A stretch of 46,119 bases of DNA from Octopus bimaculoides (Eukaryota): the NCBI RefSeq assembly GCF_001194135.2, contig NC_068981.1, positions 114,169,827 to 114,215,945 of the forward strand, read 5' to 3'. The translations under genes and the position numbers were made by a program. The notes under the pieces were generated by a model that was not told the origin of the DNA, did not search any database, and saw only the letters and a program-made list of their open reading frames with translations. Positions 4,162-33,500 of this stretch are shown in pieces. Position 1 is the first letter of the stretch. Every line of letters starts with the position of its first letter.

Positions 4162-4917
4162 TCTGATATATAAAGATGAGAATGTGTGTTTGTATGAATC
4201 TCTAAAACTCGAGAACTACACAACCAATTTCATTCCAAGTTAACATATGCCTTACTTAGGGTCCATGTAGTGTCTTTGGAGAAAAACATTTTTAACTTCT
4301 TGCATAGTTCGAGCCCACAGAAATATCATATCTCCTCCACTATTTCAGTATTACGTGTCAAAAGTGAAACAATAACATCACTGTACTGTAATGTCAGATA
4401 CTTACACTTTAACACTGAAACTATTCCACTATTTCAGTATTACCTGTCTAAAGCGAAACAATAACATGTCGCTATTGTAATTTCAAATACTTTCAATTTC
4501 AGACTCAAACTATTAAAGTGAGGCTGTACTCTCACATATATACAGGCATACTATAAGACTCAAGTTAAAAACATTCCCAACAATTCAACTTCTCTGGTTG
4601 ACATTAACACACCTATCCCCAATAGGGGCCTTCGTTCCCACATTTTAGCGCTCCATGAGCTCCATTTTTCAGGAGCAAAATCCTTTTTACAGGTTCCAGA
4701 AGACTGAAATTTTGGAATATGCGCATAAAGATCAATAGTATGGGATACATGTCTCATGATTAGATTTTTTTAGGGAGTGTAAAGAGGGAAAGAACCCTCA
4801 TGTGCAATTTTTTTCAAATTCGAATCATATGTATTCCAGTTCCTTACAGAAAATATAACAGAAAAGTCTCATTCTTCAATAGCATTTAACACGGGCAACA
4901 CCGGGTATCTCTGCTAG
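4162..4917 (+). mobile_element. Non-autonomous Helitron-like element, apparently complete
   Basis: 5' A|TC at 4161/4162. The 3' end has a degenerate GC-rich hairpin (acgggcaacaccgggt) followed by CTAG|T at 4914-4918, the Helitron terminal signature. Confidence 0.75.
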
Positions 4918-6305: not shown

Positions 6306-6675
6306 GATAAACTGAAGTAAAAGACGGACATCCAAACGCATATATAAATAATGATTTGATTCGATAACATCCTAACACACATACACGCATACGCACACAT
6401 CAATTAACTTAGGCGGTAAGCATCCGTATATACACAGAGGAGCACACACATATACACATGAACATACACTCACTCACACACACACACACACACTAAAATA
6501 GACCATAGAATCCATGTTTTGTAAAATTTTAATCTTAATTTTATTGATTTATTATTATTTTATTATTTTCAATATTCATTTTTAATCTTTATTTTTATTC
6601 TTTATTTTTATTTCTATTCTTATGCACTTCATTATTATTATGCTTCCAGTAGAAAGGATTATTATTATTATTATT

Positions 6676-8339: not shown

Positions 8340-11050
8340 TTTTAATCTACATGTTTGTTACAATCACTCACCGAGACACATCCAACTTCCTAGGGCGAGT
8401 GAAGGATAGATGTTACAGTATGACTGAAAGTTTAGGGGAGTGGCAGGTGCAGTAACGAAATATCTTCATGTAATACAACACATACATTTAAATTGATTGG
8501 ATTTTTCTAAAGATGTGGGCAGTACTTATCAGCAAAATCTTTTGGATTTCTCTGAGACATGTTTATCTTGGGATATTATCTAGATGTTTCTGGCATCCCT
8601 TTCGTAACATACCTAAGGCACCTACAATAACAGGAACAGTTCCCGCTTTAAGATGCTACATCTTTTGTATTTCAATTTCCAGGGCCTTATATTTATTTCA
8701 TTTGTCAAATTCCTTTACAGATATATCTTTATCAGTGAGAACACTTACATCTATTAGTCTAAAAGTATTTTTCGTCTGTGTCTTTCATGACTATGTCTGC
8801 TCGATTAGCTTGGATAGTTCTGTCGGTGCTGGCTGGAAAATCCCAGAGGACAGTGACATTTTTACCTTCAACGACTGGCTCAGGATGATGCTCATACCAG
8901 TAAGTAGGAATGCTGATTTCGTAGTATTTACATATTTTCCAATGTAAATACTGTCCTAAAATATCGTGGTGATCTTTCTATTCCTTTGGTGTCAGCACAG
9001 GACATTCCGAGATGAGATAGTCAATTGTTTCAAAAAATGTATCGCAGATTCTGCATTTAGTGTCAGAACCGTTTTGATGAAAGTTAGCCTGGTAGTTTTT
9101 GATAAGTAAGCTTTGATCTTGTGCAAACAATATGTAACTTTCAGTCTCTGCTTTCAATTCTGAACTCCTCAACCACTGCTGGGCTGTTGCTTTGTCTACA
9201 TCAGCATTTCGGCATCGAAGATTATACTGTCCATGCAGAGGTTTCTGGCTCTACTACTCCTGAATTTGTTTCGGCTCATTCTATTTTTACATTCTGTTCG
9301 ATCTGTTTTGCTCTTTCTCGTGGCAGTGGTTCCAGGTTCTTCATCGAATTCAGAGGTAATGCCAATTTCCTTGCGAATTTACAAGCTTTCTTAACAATAG
9401 AATGTGATTTTTTGCTACTTTTGTGTTTGCACACAAGCCGCGGCATCCAGTCTTCTGTACTAGATAGGTACTAGTTCATTGCTATTGTCGGGGCCTTACA
9501 GCACAGTCCTACATGCATCATTCCTCCTCCCCCATTACGTCTAGGTAGGTACAGACGATCAACGTCTGCTTTTAGGTTGTGCATGTTCTTAGATGTTAGT
9601 AGTTTTCTTGTCTTCCTGTCCATGCGTTGAAGCTGTGTAATATTCCAGTTAATGATGTTAAAACTGTATAGTACTACTGGAAGTGCTAGGGTGTTAATGG
9701 CTTCGATGCAATTTTTGGTGTTGAGTTCAATTTACTTCATAGTAGCATGTTGTATGCTATCGTCTTCGTTTATCCCCAGGTGTTTATAACTTTCTTGTGG
9801 ATCAAACGTCTTGATAGTAGTGTCGCTATCTAATTTAATGGAAGCTGTTTGCTTGAGCATGCCTCTTTAAAAAGTTGCTTTAGCACACTTATCAAGGCCA
9901 AAATCTATCCCGATCTCATTGCTGAACTCTTTAACACTTGTTAGCAGCCCTTCTAGCTCTTCGTCATTTCTAGCAAACAGCTTCAGATCATCCATATAAT
10001 AGAGATGATTTACTGTAATATTACACATTTTAAACTCATACCTCGTATTGCTCAGTTCGTTTGAGAGTGGGATCAGTACCATGCAAAAGTAACGGTGAGA
10101 GGGAGTCATCTAGAAAGATGCTTCGTTTCATGTTGGTGTTGTTAGATTGGCTCATCCAATTACTATGGTGTAGAAGGAGACGTGTATTCTACTTGGTCAT
10201 GCTACATTGTAAGAATTTGGAGACAACAGGAGAGATCCTATATGTCTCAAGGGCCTCGAGTATCCAATTATGTGGGAGACTATCAAACACTTTCCTGTAG
10301 TCTATCCATGTCACACTCAGGTTCTTCTTTTTGCTCCGGCAATTCTCTACAATCATTTTATTTATAAGTAATAGATCTTTGCATCCATAAGAATTCCTTT
10401 TACAACCTTTTTGAGCTTGTGGAAGGATAGAGTCCTGTTCCAGGAAAGTGTATATCCTTTCAGTATGGATGTGAGGATCTTGTAGGTGGTATTGAGAGAT
10501 ATTGTTAGTCGGCAGTTCTTTGAATTTTCCGTTTCATCAATTCTTGGTAGAAGGTATGTTGTTCCTTCGGTCAGCCAGGTAGGTATTTGCTCTGGATTCT
10601 GGATAACATCAGTTAAGGATGCAGCTAAAATTTTGGTGTACTTCTGCGAAACAGTTTAGCCAGAAGCTAAGGATCTGGTCCAGTCCTGGAGTTCTGCATT
10701 TGTGAGACTTTCTAAGAATATATCTTAGCTCTTCTACTCCTATTGCCTCCCATTTCTACTCTCCAACTTCATCCAGTTTCACTTTCTCACGTTCTATCCA
10801 GTGAGCTTCAGCATTATATTCTTTTTTGTTGCTCTATATCTTCTTCCCGAACTCTTCCATTTCCTCAGTCTCAGGTGGCTCCTTTACTTGCTTTTGTAAG
10901 TTTCTCCATAAAATGTTTTGGCATCCGTCTTGAATACATTTTGTTGATAAAATTTAAAGCTTTTGTCAAACTTTTGAGCCGTTCGTATTTCAGTTGTATT
11001 CGTTTTTTCACGAATTTATTTGGGTTCAGTCTCACTGCGTGGCACCTTGA
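8340..11050 (-). mobile_element. RLE-type (R4/Dong-like) LINE, about 2.7 kb, decayed
   Basis: RT motif VNHLYYMDDLKLFARNDEELEGLL...IGIDFGLDKCAKATF (9867-10109) and ETESYILFAQDQSL...KCRICDTFFETIDYLISECPVL (8978-9172). The RLE region lies near 8500-8900, and the 3' tail runs into (AAT)n at 8309-8332. Confidence 0.9.
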
Positions 11051-11119
11051 CTGGATTACGCAGTAGCTGATCTACGTTACCGATCGCGGTAACATGCCGG
11101 ACAGATCTTCTTGGAGACG

Positions 11120-11205
11120 TGGCATCTTGAGCAAGTGTCTTCTACTATAGCTTCGGGCCGACCAAAGCCTTGTGACTGGATTTGGAAACTGAAAGAAGCC
11201 CGTAC
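11120..11205 (+). mobile_element. SINE fragment (3' part of the family at 21055-21221)
   Basis: tctactatagcttcgggccgaccaaagccttgtgactggatttggaaactgaaagaagcccgta is the reverse complement of the 21055-21125 sequence. Confidence 0.7.
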
Positions 11206-11254
11206 TATATATGTATATGTGTGTGTATGTGTGTGGGGTGGGGGTGGTGTGTTC

Positions 11255-11437
11255 ATTTATCCCCCCACCCCAGCATCACTTGACAAACAATGTTGGTGTG
11301 TTTACCTACCCGTAAATTAGCGGTTCGGCAAAAGAGACCGGTAGAATAAGAGCTAAGCTTCCAAAGAATGGGTCGATTTGTTCCCCCAAAGGCGGTGCTC
11401 CAGCATGGTCGCAGCCAAATGGCTGAAACAAATAAAA
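11255..11437 (-). mobile_element. SINE (family with core gcggccatgctggagcaccgcc)
   Basis: Homologous to the copies at 20795-20975, 41418-41487 and 43200-43335. Confidence 0.8.
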
Positions 11438-11456
11438 GAATATATATGTGTGTGTG

Positions 11457-11500
<44 letters not shown>

Positions 11501-12439
11501 GATGAATGTATGTATGCATGTATGTATGTATGTATGCATGCATGTATGTATGTATGTATGTATATAAGTATACAGTGTTGGATTAAGTTATGAGATCAAG
11601 ACTGTATTATGCAGTAGCTGATCTATGTTATCGATCGCGGTAGCAAGCAGCGAAACTGTCCGTCAAGAAAAGCCATCCATGTTGATGTTTTACTGCTCTC
11701 CAGTAGCATAAAGAGAATGTGGATATTTGTAACATTTTTTTTTTCACTTCTGATATTTGGGATGTTGTGTGTATCTGTATATTTATATATATTTGTATAT
11801 ATGTACATGTATGTCCATATATAAGTATATGTATGTGTATGTAAAGAGAGTAAATGACAGTGAGAGAGATGTTGATATTAATATTCTTTTGAACACGCAT
11901 TGTCATTAGGAATATATTTTTCCAACAGTGCGATATAATATATCTATTCAAAAGCAATGCGTTTATTTGTTCTTCAATACATGTGCGTATTTATGATACA
12001 ATGAGATTGTTCTACGTGGTTAAATATTCAGGATGAAAAACAATTTCTTAAACAGTGCGAATTGAATAAAACCTATCGGCACACAAAGAGATTCAGAAAA
12101 TGCAAATAAAAGCTTCTATCCAATTATTTCTTTGTATATGCATATATATCTAAATCAATGTACACCGTTGTACGTGGTTTCTAATACCAAGACAATGCTA
12201 CAAAAATTTAGCTGTACCTTGGGCAAAGTCACCTTAAGGTATAGAAAAGCGAATAGTATCTTGTATATTACCGATTTTCTGCTTGTTTAATTGCTAATAT
12301 AACACAGCTATTTACTTATACTTGGTATAACCACTCACACTGAAACTTGAAAACGAATAAAAAAAATTTAATACAAATTCATACGATATCAGTCCGCGCG
12401 CGCAGGTGTGTGTGTGCGTGTGTGTGTAAGGATTTAATG

Positions 12440-14706: not shown

Positions 14707-14769
<63 letters not shown>

Positions 14770-14776
14770 TAATAAT
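14707..14776. repeat. (TAA)n microsatellite
   Basis: About 23 units, read directly. Confidence 0.95.
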
Positions 14777-16080: not shown

Positions 16081-16759
16081 GACGCACACACATATACACA
16101 CTCTCTCTCACACACATCAACACTTACACATGTATGTATAGATATATGTATGTATGTACACACACACACACATATATATNNNNNNNNNNNNNNNNNNNNN
16201 NNNNNNNNNNNNNNNNNNNNNNNNNNNNNNNNNNNNNACACACACACACACACAGTGACGCACACACATATACACACTCTCTCTCACACACATCAACACT
16301 TACACATGTATGTATAGATATATGTATGTATGTATGTATATATACACACACATACATATATACACATATTTAAAATGGAATTGCTCCTGAGAAAGAATGT
16401 AAATAACTCGTACGTGCCACAAGCAACAGCGCACTTTTTGAAATTACGAAAACACAGGAAATATGTTACCTTAAATGCATAAAACTATCAACGCCAATTT
16501 TTAAGCATACAAGACGGTATATATTTTCATGAAACAGGTGTTCAAGACGTTCTAGAATAAGAAATTTTCTTGTAAGAGGGAACAAGAACAGTGAAATGAC
16601 GAAAATGTGTATAAGGACTCGATTACTAAACTCAAAAAGAGGAACGAGAGAAGGAAATAGCGTCGGACAATGTTCAAGGAAATATTTATAAGAATGATAG
16701 AAAGAAGCAATGCACTGGCGATGCGTGAAAGGTTGAAGTTTAAAGCTACCAATACACTG

Positions 16760-17249: not shown

Positions 17250-18672
17250 GGCTACCAGCTTGAAGTAACAATTTAACCGTCATCCTTTATAGCTTAAGAA
17301 GGTCTTGCAGATTTTTTATAGTCTAAGATATCGTGATCATTTGAACCTTATGAATTAAGGATTTACATTCTCTACCCAAGATTCCAAGTTCAGCCATACT
17401 CTGCTTCAGATGGGTTGGTATGTATCCTGGTGCTCCAATAATAATAGATATGAGGCTGGAAGTGTATCTTGAGTACTGGATGGATTTGCAAACTTCTAAT
17501 CAATGGTCCATAGATGACCTCTTTCTCTTGTATTTTTCTAACCATATTTGTGTCCAGAGGACAGCTGATTTCCGCAACAGAACATGTCTTTACTTTGTGG
17601 TCTCACACAACAATATCTGGCCGGTCGTGTTTTAACTTGATAGCTGTTTAAATTTACAGGTTCCATCTGAAATTTATTTTGACTCATCGGTCTCAATATG
17701 GTCAACTTAGTTTGAAGGTACTCTCTTCTTTGTTATCCTGTTCCAGATCTTTCTGGCCACCGTATCATGCTTCATTGAAAGATAATATCTGGAAGATATT
17801 GGTCTTGGTCTTGCACAGCCTACGTTTGTTGTGTACCAACGTTTTCTGCCTTTTAGGTGGTAGGTGCTTCGTGGGGAACTCTTGTTCTTGGATTGCATGG
17901 ACGTAACCTTTAAAGTGGGATGTCATAAACCCGTCGTTACTCTATGCCAAGCTGTTCCACATTATCGATCCCTTCCATGGTTTTTATTTATTGTGCCAAG
18001 TACCCCCGTACTACCTTCTCAGTGAACTGGTTCATTTTCCGCCTCTTGTTCTGATAAGTAGACTTTATCAATGCTCCTTTAGGAGAAATTTGTATCAGTT
18101 CTTATTTCATATCCCGCTCTAGTTCATTAGCTATTCTAATAATGCTGTTGGTTTCATGGTCACAAACTCGGGCAAGATAGTAATTGATCTCCTTTCCTTT
18201 CTGCAGATGTTGTTTTAGTGTCACAATCTGTGCTTTATATGACATCAGTACAGATCTGAGATCTGAGACTACGGCCACCTTCCTTGCATGGAAGCCTGTC
18301 TCAATTGATGTTGAAGTTTCCTGTAACACTGAGCGGCTTGCGAGTTCGAATATCTGTCACATTTAGTTCTTGTAGTGACCAGTTCAAAAGCCCAAATGTA
18401 GGCGTGAGAACAGGCACTGCAAAGGTGTTGTGGGCAATGTGTTTGTTGTAAGCTGAACGTTCTGATGACCATATTCTCTTTACTCTCTCGAGGTACTCAG
18501 TTCTAGCCCTCTCCTCATTTATGGTTCTAACATTCTCATCCTGTCCGAGATAACTATAATCGTGAGCAGATTGTAGAGGTTGTATTGTCAAACCATTCAT
18601 TTTTAGGCTTTCAGAAGGAGGGCACAGCTTTTCCATGTCATAGAAGCACATTTAGACTCAAAACTTTATCCC
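17250..18672 (-). mobile_element. RLE-type LINE fragment (RT C-terminus, CCHC knuckle, RLE)
   Basis: ORF 18301-18651 (YSYLGQDEN...EYLERVKRIWSSE.SAYNKHIAHNTFAVPVLTPTFG) and SSRYYLSMKHDTVARKIWN (17707-17898). The 5' junction enters (TATG)n. Confidence 0.85.
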
Positions 18673-18867
18673 ATATATGTATACATGTATGTATGTATGT
18701 ATGTATGTATGTATGTATGTATGTATNNNNNNNNNNTATATGTATACATGTATGTATGTATGTATGTATGTATGTATGTATGTATGTATGTATGTATGTA
18801 TGAGGCTGGAAGTGTATGTATGTATGTATGTATGTATGTATGATGCTGGAAGTGTATCTTGAGTACT

Positions 18868-19184
18868 CCCTGCCATGCTGGAATTCAATTACCCAGTGTT
18901 TGACTGTTACATATGAAGGAGCATTGTCTGTTAAGGTTCTCACCATATCTTTATAGATTTCTGATGGTGTCATGCCTTTCAAATGAAGGTACTTTATGAC
19001 AGCACGATACACGAACCTCGACACTTGTTTATTCTAAAATCTGCAACAAAAAAATTAAAATATCAGAATCATAAAAATGAGCAAGAATACTCCGAAAAGA
19101 CTGTACTTACCAGAAAAAATTGTTTCAGCTACCTAGTAGCCCCGTTTCTAGGTTAGGCTCAAAACTTTTCATATACTCCTCGTT
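18868..19184 (-). mobile_element. mariner element 5' fragment with left TIR and transposase N-terminus
   Basis: The minus strand starts acgaggagtatatgaaaagttttgagcct (mariner-type TIR). The ORF reads MSRFVYRAVIKYLHLKGMTPSEIYKDMVRTLTDNAPSYVTVKHWVIEFQHGRE. Confidence 0.88.
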
Positions 19185-19199
19185 TCTATAGGTGCAGAT

Positions 19200-20608
19200 T
19201 TGTATGTTTTGTTTTAAGTATGTCTTGTCATGCATATACTTGCATATTTAGGCATGCTCACATATACTCATATGATAAAATTCTAGAAAGTTCTACAGAT
19301 TTTTACAGTTCCAGTGATAGTTTGAATCTGTAGTCTTCGAATCAGCTTTCTCCTTTCTCGTTTTGAGAAGCTTAATTTCTCAAGATTGCTATTTAGGCAG
19401 TATGTTACTTATCCTAGTGCCCCAATAATTACAAGTATAAACCTGAACTTGTAATCTGGATAGATTAATTGCAGATTTCTCAATAGTTCAGCGTGACTAT
19501 TCTCTTTTCACTGAACTTCAGCTTTATGTTAACATCCGCTGGGCAGCTGATTTCCACAACAGTACAAAATTATATCAGGCCTATGGTTTCCCCTATGCTG
19601 TGGTTCTCATATCTCTATTCTCGGGATTATCCTTTTGCCGGATCTCGTTATACGGTGTCCTAGCTACAACATCATGTCTCATCGGTAGATAATACCATGA
19701 TGACATTTTCGGACAACTGCTTATGATGTGGGCGATATCTGTATCAGTTGTCACATTTTACTGCTTGTCCTGCATCTCTATCACTTTTGTGCAACTGTTA
19801 TTTGGTCGATATTTACTGTTCCTGGAATGCAAAAGCGTTTCCTTCAAAGTGAGTGGCAATACTCCGGTTGTTGATTCATGTTAGACTGCTTTGATGCTCA
19901 ATGTTACTATCATCTCTGAGCTTTATACTAACATATCCATGCTCATATACACTCACCCTTTCATCATCGTTGCGCTAGTCATGCGACTTCTGTGGTATTC
20001 AAGGTTAACAGGAATGCTGATCAAGGGCCTGCCTTCCAAGTCTTATGATGTTATCAGCCTCATGTATGCAAACTTGGTCAAGGGATATATTTCGACACTT
20101 GAGTATTGAAAGATGTTGGCGAAGGGATATGATAAGACATTCAAAGGCATTTTGGATTAAATTTAAGCCTCTGCCGCCTTGTTTTCGTTTTAGGTAGAAG
20201 TAGTCTACATAACTGTGTATGTGGAAATTATGTGTGCTTGTTAGTATTTTCCGGGTTTCCACATCAATGGCTCGGATCTCATCAAGCGTCCATCAAACAG
20301 CCCACATGTTGGCATAAGTACTGGTACTGCAAACACATTGTGGGTCACTGTTTTAATGAATGCAGAGAGTTCTGAGGTCCTAATTTTCTTTATTCGGTTG
20401 TAATTTTCTTTAGTGACATGTGTTTTGTTACCGGTGCCATTGATATGTCTTCATCCATCCTTAGATACCTGTAACATTCTTAATCAGACACAGGAGAAAC
20501 AGTCAAGTCATTGATGGAAATGTCGCTAGTCTGGTTTACAGTTTTTCCTCCTTTCTCAACCATATAATAACACTTATTCCGACAAACTTTAATCTTATAT
20601 ACTTTGAG
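19200..20608 (-). mobile_element. RLE-type LINE, 5'-truncated copy of the family at 21327-23786
   Basis: ORF 20005-20262 (ETRKILTSTHNFHIHSYVDYFYLKRKQGGRGL) is nearly identical to part of 21982-22581. The 5' junction ctttgag|tatgtatg enters (TATG)n. Confidence 0.88.
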
Positions 20609-20794
20609 TATGTATGTATGTATGTATGTATGTATGTATGCATGTGTGTGTATGTATGTATGTATGTCATTATTCTGTTGATTTCAAAATTTTTTGCCAA
20701 TAAAGAAAGAACCGGTCTCTGACCTAGATCCAAGGTTCCTTTGGAATTTCTGCATCAACAACAAACTAGTTTTGTTTGTATTCTTTTATTCTTT

Positions 20795-20975
20795 TATTTG
20801 TTTTAGTCATTTGACTGCAGCCATGCTGGAGCACCACCTTTAGTCGAACAAATAGACCCCAGGATTTATTTTTTTGTAAGCTTAGTACTTATTCTATCGG
20901 TAGTTTTTGCCGAACCACTAAGTTACGGGGACGTAAACACATCAATATCGGTTGTCAAGCGATGGTGGGCGCCAA
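20795..20975 (+). mobile_element. SINE (gcggccatgctggagcacc family)
   Basis: ttagtcatttgactgcagccatgctggagcaccacctttagtcgaacaaat...gccgaaccactaagttacggggacgtaaacac. Confidence 0.8.
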
Positions 20976-21054
20976 NNNNNNNNNNACACACACACGCACA
21001 CACACACACGCACACACACATACGCACACACACACACACACACATACATGTATA

Positions 21055-21221
21055 TACGACGGGCTTTTCAGTTTCTGTCTACCAAATCCACTCACAAAGC
21101 TTTGTTCGGCCCAAGGTTGTAGTAGAAGAAACTTGCCCAAGGTGCCACGCAGTGTGACTGAACCCGGAACCATGTGGATGGTAGGCAAGCTACTTACCAC
21201 ACACAACCACTCCTGCGCCTA
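21055..21221 (-). mobile_element. tRNA-derived SINE
   Basis: The minus-strand head aggcgcaggagtggttgtgtgtggtaagtagcttgc...ggttccgggttcagtc carries A/B-box-like elements. Confidence 0.75.
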
Positions 21222-21326
21222 TGTATGTATGTATGTATGCGTATAGGTATGTATGTATCTATGTATGTATTTTGTATGTATGTATGTATGTATGCATGTA
21301 TGTATGTATGCATGTATGTATGTATG

Positions 21327-23786
21327 TGCAAATTTGTTTTATGCATGTATTCTCAAGCATATGGTTACAGGTTTTTACAGTTNNNNNNNNNNATGCATGT
21401 ATTCTCAAGCATATGGTTACAGGTTTTTACAGTTCCAGTGATGGATTGGATCTGTAGTCTTCGAATTACATTTCTCCTTTCTGGTGTTGATAAGCCTAAT
21501 TTCTCAAGATTGGTATTTAGGCAGTGTGTTACTTATCCCAGGGCCTCGATAATTACAGGTATAAACCTGAACTTGTAATCTGGATAGAGTAACTGCAGAT
21601 TTCTCAAGAGTTCTGCATCGGTGTTTTGTTTTTCACTGATCTTCAGCTTTATGTTAACATCCGCTGGGCAGCTAATTTCCACAACTGTGCACAGTTTCTC
21701 TTCTCTATCCCAAATCATTATATCAGGTCTCTTGTGCTTACATTATAATGATGTCTTCACTGGTACATTCCACCAGTATTCCTTCTACCATATTGTGAGC
21801 TTTTATTTCTTTGTCCTCGGTATTTACCTTCCAACGGATTTCATTATAGTGTCCTATCTACAACGTCTTGTCTCATCGGTAGATAATACCGTGATGACAT
21901 TTTCGGACAACTGCTTATGATGTGGGTGATAGCTTCGGTGTAAACTCCACAAAGTCTACATCGGTTGTCACATTTTACGGCTTATCCTGCATCTCTATCC
22001 TTTTTGTGCATCAAGTATTTGGTTGATATTTCCTGTTCTACGATTGCAAACACATACCCTTCAAAGTGAGATGTAGTAATCAGGCTGTTCGTCCATGATA
22101 AACTGCTTTGATGATCGATGCTACTATCAACACGGAGCTTTCTACTAACATATCCATGCATAGTCTTCTGCTCATATAGACTCATCCTTTCATCTGATGA
22201 TATGTTGCGGTAGAGTCGTGCGACTTCTTTGGGCATGTATTCTAGGTTACTAGACAAAGAGTGTTGCTCAAGGAGCTGCCTTCTAAGTCTTATGATGTTA
22301 TCATCTTCATGTATGCAAACTTGGTCAAGGGATGGACTTCGACATTTGGTGGTTAAAAGATGTTGCCGAAAGGATATAAGACATTTAAAGGCATTTTGGA
22401 TCGATGTTAAGCCTCTGCCGCCTTGTTTTCGTTTTAGGTAGAAGTAGTCTACATAACTGTGTATGTGGAAATTATGTGTGCTTGTTAGTATTTTTCGGGT
22501 TTCCACATCAATGGCCCGGATCTCATCGCGCATCCAATCAAGCATCTCAAATGTCGGCATAAGTACTGGCACTGCAAACATATTGTGGTCTACTGTTTTA
22601 ATGAATGCAGAGAGTTCTCAGGTCCTAATTTTCTTTATTCGCTTGTGACACGTGTTTTGATATCGGTGCCATTGTAAGATATATTTTCATCCACCCCTAA
22701 ATACCTTTAACATTCCTCGTCAAATACAGGGGAAACAGTCAAATCATTGATGGAGATGCTACTCATCTGATTTATAGTTTTCCCCCTTTTCACAACCATA
22801 TAACAACATTTATCCTGACCAAACTCCAAACTTACATCCTTTGAGAATGTAACTATGTCAAGGCTCTTTTTCATCTCACGCATATTCTTTGCATAAAGTT
22901 TGAAATCATCCTCAAAGAAATATTGTGTAATTTTGGTATATCTGTATCCTTGTGAACAAGTGAGATATACTTCAGCCTTCCTTAACATGAATGACAAGGA
23001 GCTTACAGAAAGTATAAACAACATCACAGAGAGGCTGTCTCCTTGGTATATGCCTTTGCGATATTGTATTCTATCGGTGATAATGCTGCCACTCTTTGCA
23101 TTTAATTTCAAGATGGTGGCCCACGATGAAGTAAAGTCGACTATGGCTTTGACTATTCTCACTGGAACTTTAGCAAGTTGAAGGGCTTTTAGCATCCATG
23201 AGTGGGGAACAGAGTCAAAGGTTTTCTTGTAATCTAGCCGCATTGACACTAAGTTCCTCCTATGCTCTCGCACCTCTGACATCACAGTTTTGTTGATTAA
23301 CAATTGCTCGGCACATCCCCAGATTCCCTTCCTCCTAGTTGCTTGTTCTGCCGTGATAAAGTTATTGGTTTCCCAATGGTCCCGGAGAACCATTTAATGC
23401 TGTATATATTTTATACATTACGTTCTGGCATGCAATTGGCCGGTAGTTTTTTTTTTTGTTTTCTTTTTCCCATGTGGGTGGTTCTGCATTTGGGTATCAA
23501 TTTTGTCTCTGTTAGAGAAAAACCAGCGGGGTATGCAACTGTTCCCAATGAAAGCTTGCCGGTACAGATTGATAAAATATGGTAGAATGTTAGCTTCTTG
23601 TACCAATATTCAACAATCAGGTCTTTTTCAAGTGTTTTTCCATCCTGGAGTTTCTGTATCATAGTTGCAAAAGTTTCACCATCAATGTTATGTCTTGGGT
23701 GTAACGCAGGAGCAATCACTTTTTCGGATTTCTTCCAGCCACAGAGCATCTTGGTTAAATTACTCCAGATTTTCCTCGAGAAGGAG
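21327..23786 (-). mobile_element. RLE-type LINE, about 2.45 kb, 5'-truncated, embedded in a (TATG)n array
   Basis: RT motifs GIWGCAEQLLIN, LDYKKTFDSVPHSW, GIYQGDSLS and YFFEDDFKLYAKN (22707-23393). RLE motif VVEISCPADVN...IPVIIEALG (21533-21718). (TATG)n lies on both sides. Confidence 0.92.
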
Positions 23787-24019
23787 TATGTATGTATGTA
23801 TGTATGTATGTATGTATGTATGTATGTATGTATGTATGTATGTGTGTGTGTGTGTGCACGTGTATGTGTGTGTGTGTGTGTGTGTGCATATGATATAGAA
23901 ATATATATATATGTATTTGTACATATGATATACAAATATATATTTGTATATAGGGGCGGGAGGTATTTGAGGACATACTTGGTAATCTCTAATTTACTAT
24001 GATCCAAATATGTTTTTTA

Positions 24020-33131: not shown

Positions 33132-33436
33132 GTCATTTCAGAAAATGAGGAGAGTATGCACAAGACTTTCAAGCTGTGTTTCATTTATTATTACTATTAT
33201 TATTATTGTTATTATTATTATTATTATTATTATAAATTGAGGCTTTGTTGTAACTCCTGGAGTCTTGCATGCGTAGCTGCCTACAGTACCATGCTATTTC
33301 TTCTTTACAACTACATAATACTTTCCTAGTTATTCTGGTTGTACCAATGAGGCAAATCTTTTGTGACAGTTCTGCTGAACACTATTCTTATTTCCTTTAT
33401 ATTCCTCTCGATACCTTCTGATACTGTTTTTTTCCC

Positions 33437-33489
<53 letters not shown>

Positions 33490-33500
33490 GTTATTATTTT
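33437..33500. repeat. (ATT)n microsatellite directly upstream of a splice acceptor
   Basis: About 20 units ending ...attgttattattttgtag at 33504. Confidence 0.95.

Follow-up and report, generated by a model that had tools for sequence, protein, structure and literature searches.

A 46,119-nucleotide stretch of the Octopus bimaculoides genome (NCBI RefSeq assembly GCF_001194135.2, contig NC_068981.1, positions 114,169,827 to 114,215,945 of the forward strand; hereafter the window) contains a series of decayed long interspersed nuclear elements (LINEs) encoding a restriction-like endonuclease (RLE), which lie among arrays of the tetranucleotide (CATA)n. The sequence makes it very probable that this element inserts specifically into (CATA)n and that dead, 5'-truncated copies belonging to two or more related families lie clustered head to tail in the window. 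An RLE-bearing family with this target had been proposed in an earlier, sequence-only reading of the same DNA, and it is backed here by the anatomy of the copies, by the repeat statistics of the window and, above all, by independent relatives with (CATA)n on both sides. The element belongs to the retrotransposons that lack long terminal repeats (non-LTR) and is of the R2/R4/Dong type, its one open reading frame (ORF) encoding the reverse transcriptase (RT), then a CCHC knuckle and, at the C-terminal end, a PD-(D/E)XK RLE. What is new is the (CATA)n target for a known kind of site-specific RLE retrotransposon.

Copies in the window and their flanking arrays

All RLE-LINE fragments found in the window lie on the minus strand, and the flanking repeat, read in the sense of the element, is (CATA)n. 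Further copies were located by tblastn using the stitched protein of copy A and an intact 1158-residue relative, P0001, as queries. The cluster reads as follows, in the direction of the element.

23787 to 23855, minus strand: 5' array of copy A, (CATA)17; Tandem Repeats Finder (TRF) reports 23786-23855 with 98% matches
23786 to 21326, minus strand: copy A, a 5'-truncated, dead RLE-type LINE that begins at about residue 351 of P0001
21220 to 21325, minus strand: 3' array of copy A, (CATA)~27 directly after the copy (TRF 21220-21327)
20609 to 20667, minus strand: 5' array of copy B, (CATA)~15, adjoining its 5' junction
20608 to 19192, minus strand: copy B, of the same family as A, 5'-truncated at about residue 654
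18868 to 19191, minus strand: mariner-like fragment, HTH_48 (Mos1-type), PF17906, E=1.2e-8
18673 to 18867, minus strand: arrays 5' of copy C, (CATA)n interrupted by a 28-bp C-like piece, a 15-bp repeat and an artefactual gap (18727-18736)
18672 to 17213, minus strand: copy C, of a different family from A and B, 5'-truncated at about residue 656 inside a GACATA motif
17212 to 16755, minus strand: copy E, a fourth fragment, truncated at both ends

Copy A is flanked on both sides. Outward of its 5' array lie (CA)n and unrelated DNA, with no 3' end of another element, and we take this array to be the target-derived 5' flank. The 3' terminus reads ...AAACAAATTTGCAC with 21326 as its last base, and the array that follows is tail plus target. 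The sequence-only reading had described (TATG)n on both sides of this LINE and at the 5' junctions of B (20608) and of the third fragment (18672), all of which we recover. Its account is amended in that the elements run on the minus strand, the repeat in their sense is (CATA)n and 21326 is the 3' end of A; its list of copies comprised A, B and C and lacked copy E.

All of the window copies are dead and without an N-terminus. Copy A retains its catalytic residues yet has 7 in-frame stops and at least 4 frameshifts, and stops number 9 in B and 14 in C. A and B share 79-94% nucleotide identity in blocks and group with a bootstrap of 99, while copy C is closest to an element of Argonauta hians (bootstrap 100). 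The 3' terminus of C, ...AAAGAGAC (17220-17213), agrees with the termini of two relatives introduced below, L001 and L002; no array lies beyond it, and copy E begins with GACATAAC directly after it. Copy B ends in ...ACAAATCTGCAC at 19192, likewise with no array beyond. Here the mariner-like fragment adjoins at ...GCACC|TA|TAGAAACG, with its start codon 166 nt past the end of B, and stops after about 330 bp. The mariner-like element probably inserted at the TA of B's former tail; its terminal repeat could not be defined from the single copy in the window.

The short piece within the arrays 5' of copy C (18867-18840) agrees at 27 of 28 bases with the RLE-coding part of that copy (17477-17450), and a CATA common to both marks where it meets (CATA)n. 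The final 15 bp of the piece occur once more within the array, at about 18796-18810. A deletion between an internal CATA motif and a tail array may have produced the piece.

Three 10-N assembly gaps fall within the cluster. The gap at 18727-18736 has a 53-bp exact suffix-prefix overlap at its flanks (duplicated stretch 18674-18789), and that at 21383-21392, in the C-terminal coding region and 3' end of A, lies between two exact 42-bp copies (21341 to 21434). Both are unmerged contig overlaps across which the sequence is continuous, so that the true length of copy A is 52 bp less than written and that of C's 5' array 63 bp less. The third gap, 20976-20985, shows no overlap and lies inside the internal (TG)n of a short interspersed nuclear element (SINE) between A and B. 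The A-B spacing as written is therefore not fixed, and no junction depends on that gap.

(TATG)n is common in this genome, as the sequence-only reading remarked in warning against chance adjacency. We counted arrays of at least four units, with the window itself as background. They cover 0.26% of the window outside the finding and 1.0% with it, whereas four of the six ends of copies A, B and C lie inside such arrays, all in one orientation. The probability of at least four of six junctions falling in arrays by chance is 7e-10 to 2e-7, which makes chance adjacency extremely unlikely against the window background. Since A/B and C belong to different families and their truncation points differ, the copies are independent insertions and not local duplicates. 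Across the whole window, all ten arrays of the (TATG)n class with at least four units have TATG on the plus strand.

Relatives with the same flanks in other genomes

Eight families of relatives are CATA-flanked: public metagenome assemblies supplied seven of them, and the eighth is from the genome of Argonauta hians. Each has sense-strand (CATA)n directly 5' of the element. (CATA)n is also present on the 3' side wherever that end is visible, in decayed form in Argonauta.

L001: (CATA)n at both ends; intact ORF of 1158 amino acids
L006 and L007: (CATA)n at both ends
L013 and L014: (CATA)n at both ends; in L013 the 3' array gives way to unique DNA
L022: (CATA)n at both ends; full-length copy within a 68.8-kb contig
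L003: (CATA)n of 41 units on the 5' side, with non-element DNA upstream
L002 (Argonauta hians): (CATA)n on the 5' side, with non-element DNA upstream; 3' tail decayed
L028 (1-12978): four head-to-tail copies of a CATA-type relative, joined by (CATA)n, an arrangement resembling the E-C-B-A series of the window

The 5' junction of a CATA-clade copy can be seen at 11 loci, and at all of them it falls within (CATA)n. Four further loci (L004, L009, L011 and L012) were uninformative, their contigs being too short or unflanked, and a scan of viral contigs gave no match.

Two features of these relatives are recorded in their own right. In L028, three of the four copies share an identical junction, (CATA)7|AGATTCTGG, and probably arose by tandem duplication of a single truncated copy; the 3' untranslated region carries a 15-bp minisatellite, (GTCTATATTGTCTGR)n, with a (CATA)50 block inside it at 9845-10044. 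Several full-length relatives have a short hairpin followed by a conserved motif 20-80 nt past the 5' array, which reads GGACGTGT in L006 (about 150-170), L007 (about 135-155) and L013 (about 115-135), and GGCGGATGTGT in L008 (about 75-95). The motif, which Rfam does not recognize, may contribute to 5' processing or to a promoter.

Protein architecture

The stitched reading of copy A gives 803 residues and matches the Pfam family RVT_1 (E=1.4e-16). Its motifs follow the order typical of this element type.

23448 to 23422, minus strand: RT motif NYRPIA, copy A
22922 to 22893, minus strand: RT motif YFFEDD, copy A
22428 to 22408, minus strand: thumb motif GGRGL, copy A
21960 to 21904, minus strand: CCHC knuckle (CRLC...H...C), CRLCGVYTEAITHIISSCP, copy A
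21730 to 21623, minus strand: RLE motif RPD...E.SCP.D...EK, copy A; the RLE reaches about 21536

Further RT motifs in the stitched protein are LDYKKTFDS, QGDSLS and FEDD. Among solved structures, R2 proteins are the best matches to copy A by sequence. Its nearest relatives by protein search are at best 43-44% identical, and the closest full-length ones comprise 1130-1160 residues. This architecture, a single ORF with RT, CCHC and C-terminal PD-(D/E)XK RLE, is that of R4/Dong elements. These also insert at specific sites, in ribosomal DNA or a microsatellite, and have the target repeat on either side; (CATA)n lies on both sides of A, L001, L006, L007, L013, L022 and L028.

We used AlphaFold to model the intact relative P0001 from an alignment of 49 sequences (pLDDT 86.4, pTM 0.77; the predicted local distance difference test and predicted template modelling scores). 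The model matches R2Tg, R2Pm and R2Bm over about 900-1200 columns, throughout its length, and these rank above LINE-1 ORF2p. At the N-terminus it predicts a three-helix bundle (residues 25-78, pLDDT about 85). The N-termini of the relatives have conserved, spaced Trp/Tyr residues; no Cys/His zinc-finger pattern was seen in them, and no Myb/SANT family was detected by hmmscan against Pfam. R4/Dong elements have been described as having a divergent Myb/SANT-like N-terminal domain without zinc fingers (PMC7998251). The predicted three-helix N-terminus would fit this description, though hmmscan calls no Myb.

Within helix 3 of this N-terminal region (P0001 residues about 20-80), three ACTT-flanked families read LRDQA(S/D)RV. 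The position of the Asp is occupied by Glu or Gln in six of seven CATA-flanked families and by Thr in P0001. The site is a candidate specificity position, in a comparison of only three sequences with seven.

Junctions and a possible insertion mechanism

The junctions themselves are regular. The 3' array can be read as beginning with CATA immediately after the last element base in every case (A, L001, L006, L007, L013, L022, L028), and 5' arrays mostly end in a complete ...CATA (B, L003, L006, L007, L028). The 5' junction of B reads ctttgag|tatg at 20608, where copy A has ctttgagaatgtaactatgtc (22838-22859). In the sense of the element, this internal CATA-like motif of A is

22838 to 22859, minus strand: gACATAgtTACATt|ctcaaagg, copy A, with 10 of 14 bases in (CATA)n register

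and B begins as (CATA)n|CTCAAAG, exactly at the bar of A's gACATAgtTACATt|CTCAAAGG. The microhomology to the array that the sequence-only reading saw at this junction is thus real, and it extends to C and to the truncated L028 copies: B is truncated after ACATAGTTACATT, C within GACATA and the L028 copies at GAACATA|TTCTGG.

Truncation points also recur. Copy A (23786) and the truncated L028 copies (456, 3549 and 10378), which come from a different organism, share the same truncation codon at about residue 351 of P0001, and the truncation points of B and C lie no more than 3 residues from residue 655. Both positions are hot spots of recurrent truncation, and in B, C and the L028 copies they coincide with CATA-like motifs. 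Truncation at such motifs is what would be expected if the complementary DNA (cDNA) joins a (CATA)n target end.

On the model of R2 and Dong, with whose target-primed reverse transcription the junction features agree, the element protein would bind the array and nick the (TATG)n strand. The freed ...TATG-3' end could then pair with CAUA repeats at the 3' end of the RNA and prime reverse transcription. The upstream (CATA)n end would anneal or join to the cDNA, often at internal CATA-like motifs, which would yield 5'-truncated copies bordered by the array. Each insertion would leave an upstream array and renew the downstream one, allowing repeated hits in the same orientation. The one-orientation series E-C-B-A most likely reflects serial insertion into a single array, as the array left after each insertion can be hit again. 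The nick position and the priming by tail pairing are transferred from the known systems, and we infer the order of insertion and a role of the N-terminal domain in reading the target.

Origin of the flanking arrays

Several observations weigh against specific insertion into (CATA)n. Arrays are missing on the 3' side of B, C and L023 and on the 5' side of E, and the 3' array of L002 is present only in decayed form. For most of the relatives the metagenome contig is only about 4 kb long and stops within the arrays, such that the outer flanks are unseen, and a contig of this kind may represent a collapsed consensus sequence; L013-L016 may be one family seen four times. A self-cleaving ribozyme like that of hepatitis delta virus (HDV) is a feature of the 5' end of R4/Dong elements (PMC3774820). 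No Rfam hit to one, or to any other ribozyme, was obtained at E<=1 in 11 full-length relatives, where the scan returned only spurious microRNA matches on microsatellites; such ribozymes are hard to detect. Finally, a segment of L022 is duplicated outside both of its arrays, which could mean that the arrays travelled with the element.

In one alternative, (CATA)n would be nothing but the 3' tail of the element itself, comparable to the microsatellite tails of CR1/L2-type LINEs; integration would not be specific to arrays, and 5' arrays would be the tails of older neighbours or coincidental. Every family has the repeat on its 3' side, head-to-tail elements do occur (L028 and the window cluster), and the absence of 3' arrays from B and C indicates that arrays come and go. 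However, the DNA upstream of the 5' arrays is not that of an element in A, L003, L022 and L002, nor in L027 and L005 of the ACTT type described below. The repeat is not confined to the 3' side, as it would be in CR1/L2/RTE-like LINEs, given the 5' arrays at all of the visible CATA-clade 5' junctions, and truncation at CATA-like motifs requires a (CATA)n upstream end. We consider this explanation very unlikely.

Alternatively, the arrays could be carried within the transposed unit as co-transcribed leader and tail repeats, with integration elsewhere producing a long target-site duplication. The duplicated segment of L022 would suggest this: 108 bp, consisting of (TAGA)n and 68 unique bp, abut the outer array edges at 4397-4504 and 8765-8872 with 90.7% identity. 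The duplication nevertheless looks older than the insertion, because 4 of the 68 unique positions differ between the duplicates, whereas the ORF lying between them, about 3.5 kb long, has a single frameshift. We tentatively take it as an older local repeat and not as a target-site duplication. Moreover, A and the ACTT-type L027 have unique, non-duplicated outer flanks, and 5'-truncated copies cannot bring a 5' leader array with them. Carriage of the arrays is about as unlikely as an origin as tails alone.

That the adjacency is due to chance in a (TATG)n-rich genome, or that a single accidental arrangement gave rise to A, B and C by local segmental duplication, is extremely unlikely: the repeat is common and the copies all lie within 7 kb on one strand, but the background coverage of 0.26-1% gives P <= 2e-7, A and B are 79% identical with different truncation points, C is from another family, and unrelated samples as well as Argonauta show the same flanks.

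Range of targets among related families

A neighbour-joining tree was calculated from the RT-to-RLE region (662 columns, 100 bootstraps) of these elements, with no reference Dong, R4, HERO, NeSL or R2 sequences in it. A (TAA)n-flanked group separates from the clade of A, B and C with a bootstrap of 99. Among the members of this sister group are P0070/L019, which has (TAA)n at both ends, copy D of the window, and proteins from Lepidoptera and cnidarians; (TAA)n flanks were seen in L019-L021 and L010. Within the A/B/C clade, one subclade is entirely CATA-flanked (bootstrap 92). In the other, CATA families (A/B, P0002, P0004, P0005, P0013) are intermixed with families flanked by (ACTT)n. The flanks other than pure (CATA)n are as follows.

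L005 and L008: (ACTT)n at the 5' end
L027: 5'-truncated, bordered on either side by (ACTT)n, with outer flanks that are unique and lack a long duplication
L017: (ACTT)n flank
P0017, on a deeper branch: (ACTT)n at the 3' end
P0037, on a deeper branch: (AC)n at the 3' end in three samples
L024-L026: (AC)n flank
P0023, on a deeper branch: mixed (ACAT)n(ACTT)n(ACAT)n array at the 5' end

Microsatellite targeting is thus a property of the clade, and the target has changed several times. Families targeting ACAT and ACTT share 45-55% protein identity, their targets being apart by 1 base of the 4-base unit, and CATA families and the (TAA)n group share only 26-30%. We tentatively propose, giving the idea nearly but not quite even weight, that these elements form an undescribed Dong/R4-like clade in cephalopods and other marine animals, sister to a (TAA)n group and repeatedly re-targeted among (ACAT)n, (ACTT)n and (AC)n.

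The (TAA)n type is also represented in the window itself.

10851 to 6665, minus strand: cluster D, Dong-like copies of the (TAA)n type, head to tail and joined by (AAT)n

D1 (10851 to about 8331) ends in (AAT)8 and is followed by a 3' fragment of about 70 bp with (AAT)n (about 8307-8235) and by D2, which is 5'-truncated at about residue 729 and ends in (AAT)n near 6665. The layout is that of the CATA cluster with a different repeat. The sequence-only reading had suggested a switch of target from TAA to CATA with both specificities in this one locus. The second part holds; a direct switch is not shown, as the families closest to the CATA ones have (ACTT)n and (AC)n as their targets.

Clean, long (TAA)23 and (TTA)16-21 arrays without an adjoining element occur at 14707-14776, 33185-33233 and 33437-33498, and would be potential unoccupied targets for Dong-like (TAA)n families.

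Comparison with known elements

By both sequence and fold, the best matches are to R2 (structures 8gh6, 9dou, 9nl2/3), with which the element shares the RT-CCHC-RLE order and, presumably, the mechanism of target-primed reverse transcription. R2 occupies a unique site in 28S ribosomal DNA and has N-terminal zinc-finger and Myb domains. In contrast, the present elements have microsatellite flanks, and their relatives' N-termini show no zinc finger.

The resemblance to Dong is closer in target type. Dong inserts into (TAA)n, including in a snail (PMC3812793, PMC4640811), and elements of this organization are known from Bombyx mori, Anopheles, the snail Biomphalaria, ostracods and cnidarians (PMC7998251, PMC3812793). 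Shared features are the single ORF, RT with C-terminal RLE, microsatellite on both sides, a short N-terminus, predicted to be helical, without zinc fingers, and 5'-truncated, head-to-tail copies; moreover, the present clade has as its sister the (TAA)n group of P0070 and window copy D. The difference lies in the tetranucleotide target, (CATA)n instead of (TAA)n, in a comparison that included no reference Dong, R4 or HERO sequences.

Repeats that include (CATA)n are targeted by a different type of enzyme. Waldo elements of the R1 clade (WaldoAg1/2, WaldoFs1), which use an apurinic/apyrimidinic endonuclease (APE), insert into ACAY repeats, and these include (ACAT)n, that is, (CATA)n (PMC3812793). 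Their AP-endonuclease is N-terminal, whereas in the present elements the RLE is C-terminal and the fold R2-like, and the shared target is convergence, not relatedness. Other APE-type elements with microsatellite targets are Mino (AC), Kibi (TC) and Koshi (TTC) (PMC3812793, PMC4640811). Among RLE-type LINEs, Togen, which is near NeSL, is specific for (TG)n, and some HERO families are microsatellite-specific (PMC4640811). The likeness to these lies in target type and RLE; the repeat motifs differ.

Surveys of octopus repeats describe Dong-R4 elements as abundant and recently active (PMC13282606, PMC8967140), one of them with 5 families and 1,129 recent near-full-length insertions in O. vulgaris (PMC13282606); no microsatellite target is mentioned in them. 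We found no description in the literature of an RLE (Dong/R4) family specific for (CATA)n or (ACTT)n; Repbase Reports lay outside this search, and a prior annotation there is possible. The sequence-only reading, which knew of no (CATA)n-specific family, therefore stands for the Dong/R4 type, while Waldo provides an APE-type precedent for a tetranucleotide target.

Other features of the window

Beyond the two clusters, one further fragment was too decayed to use.

37073 to 36688, minus strand: fragment F, with no array

Two copies of a tRNA-headed SINE with internal (TG)n, a kind which we take to be common in octopod genomes, lie at 20790-21219 (minus strand) and about 11060-11440 (plus strand). 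The first sits against the 3' array of copy A and is the one that holds the gap at 20976-20985; behind the second, on the strand of that copy, comes (TA)n(TATG)n (11441-11571). At a 58-N gap (16180-16237), a similar 97-bp repeat of the right flank is found inside the left flank.

Implications

Site-specific RLE retrotransposons, R2 and its kin, are under development as tools for gene insertion at a chosen site. To our knowledge, how R2-type elements acquire their targets is poorly understood. The clade, which is well supported, holds intact and apparently active families, and families with targets one base apart (ACAT and ACTT) form a compact natural experiment for mapping target determinants. 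If the proposed re-targeting is true, the clade would be a natural series for how an R2-type enzyme reads its target, and it may explain the very high copy number of 'Dong-R4' LINEs together with part of the (TATG)n load of octopus genomes. For cephalopod genomics, (CATA)n targeting would mean that insertion of the abundant 'Dong-R4' LINEs is not random. Clusters in head-to-tail order, (TATG)n arrays that are interrupted and renewed, and breaks in assemblies at such sites would all be explained by insertion into microsatellites.

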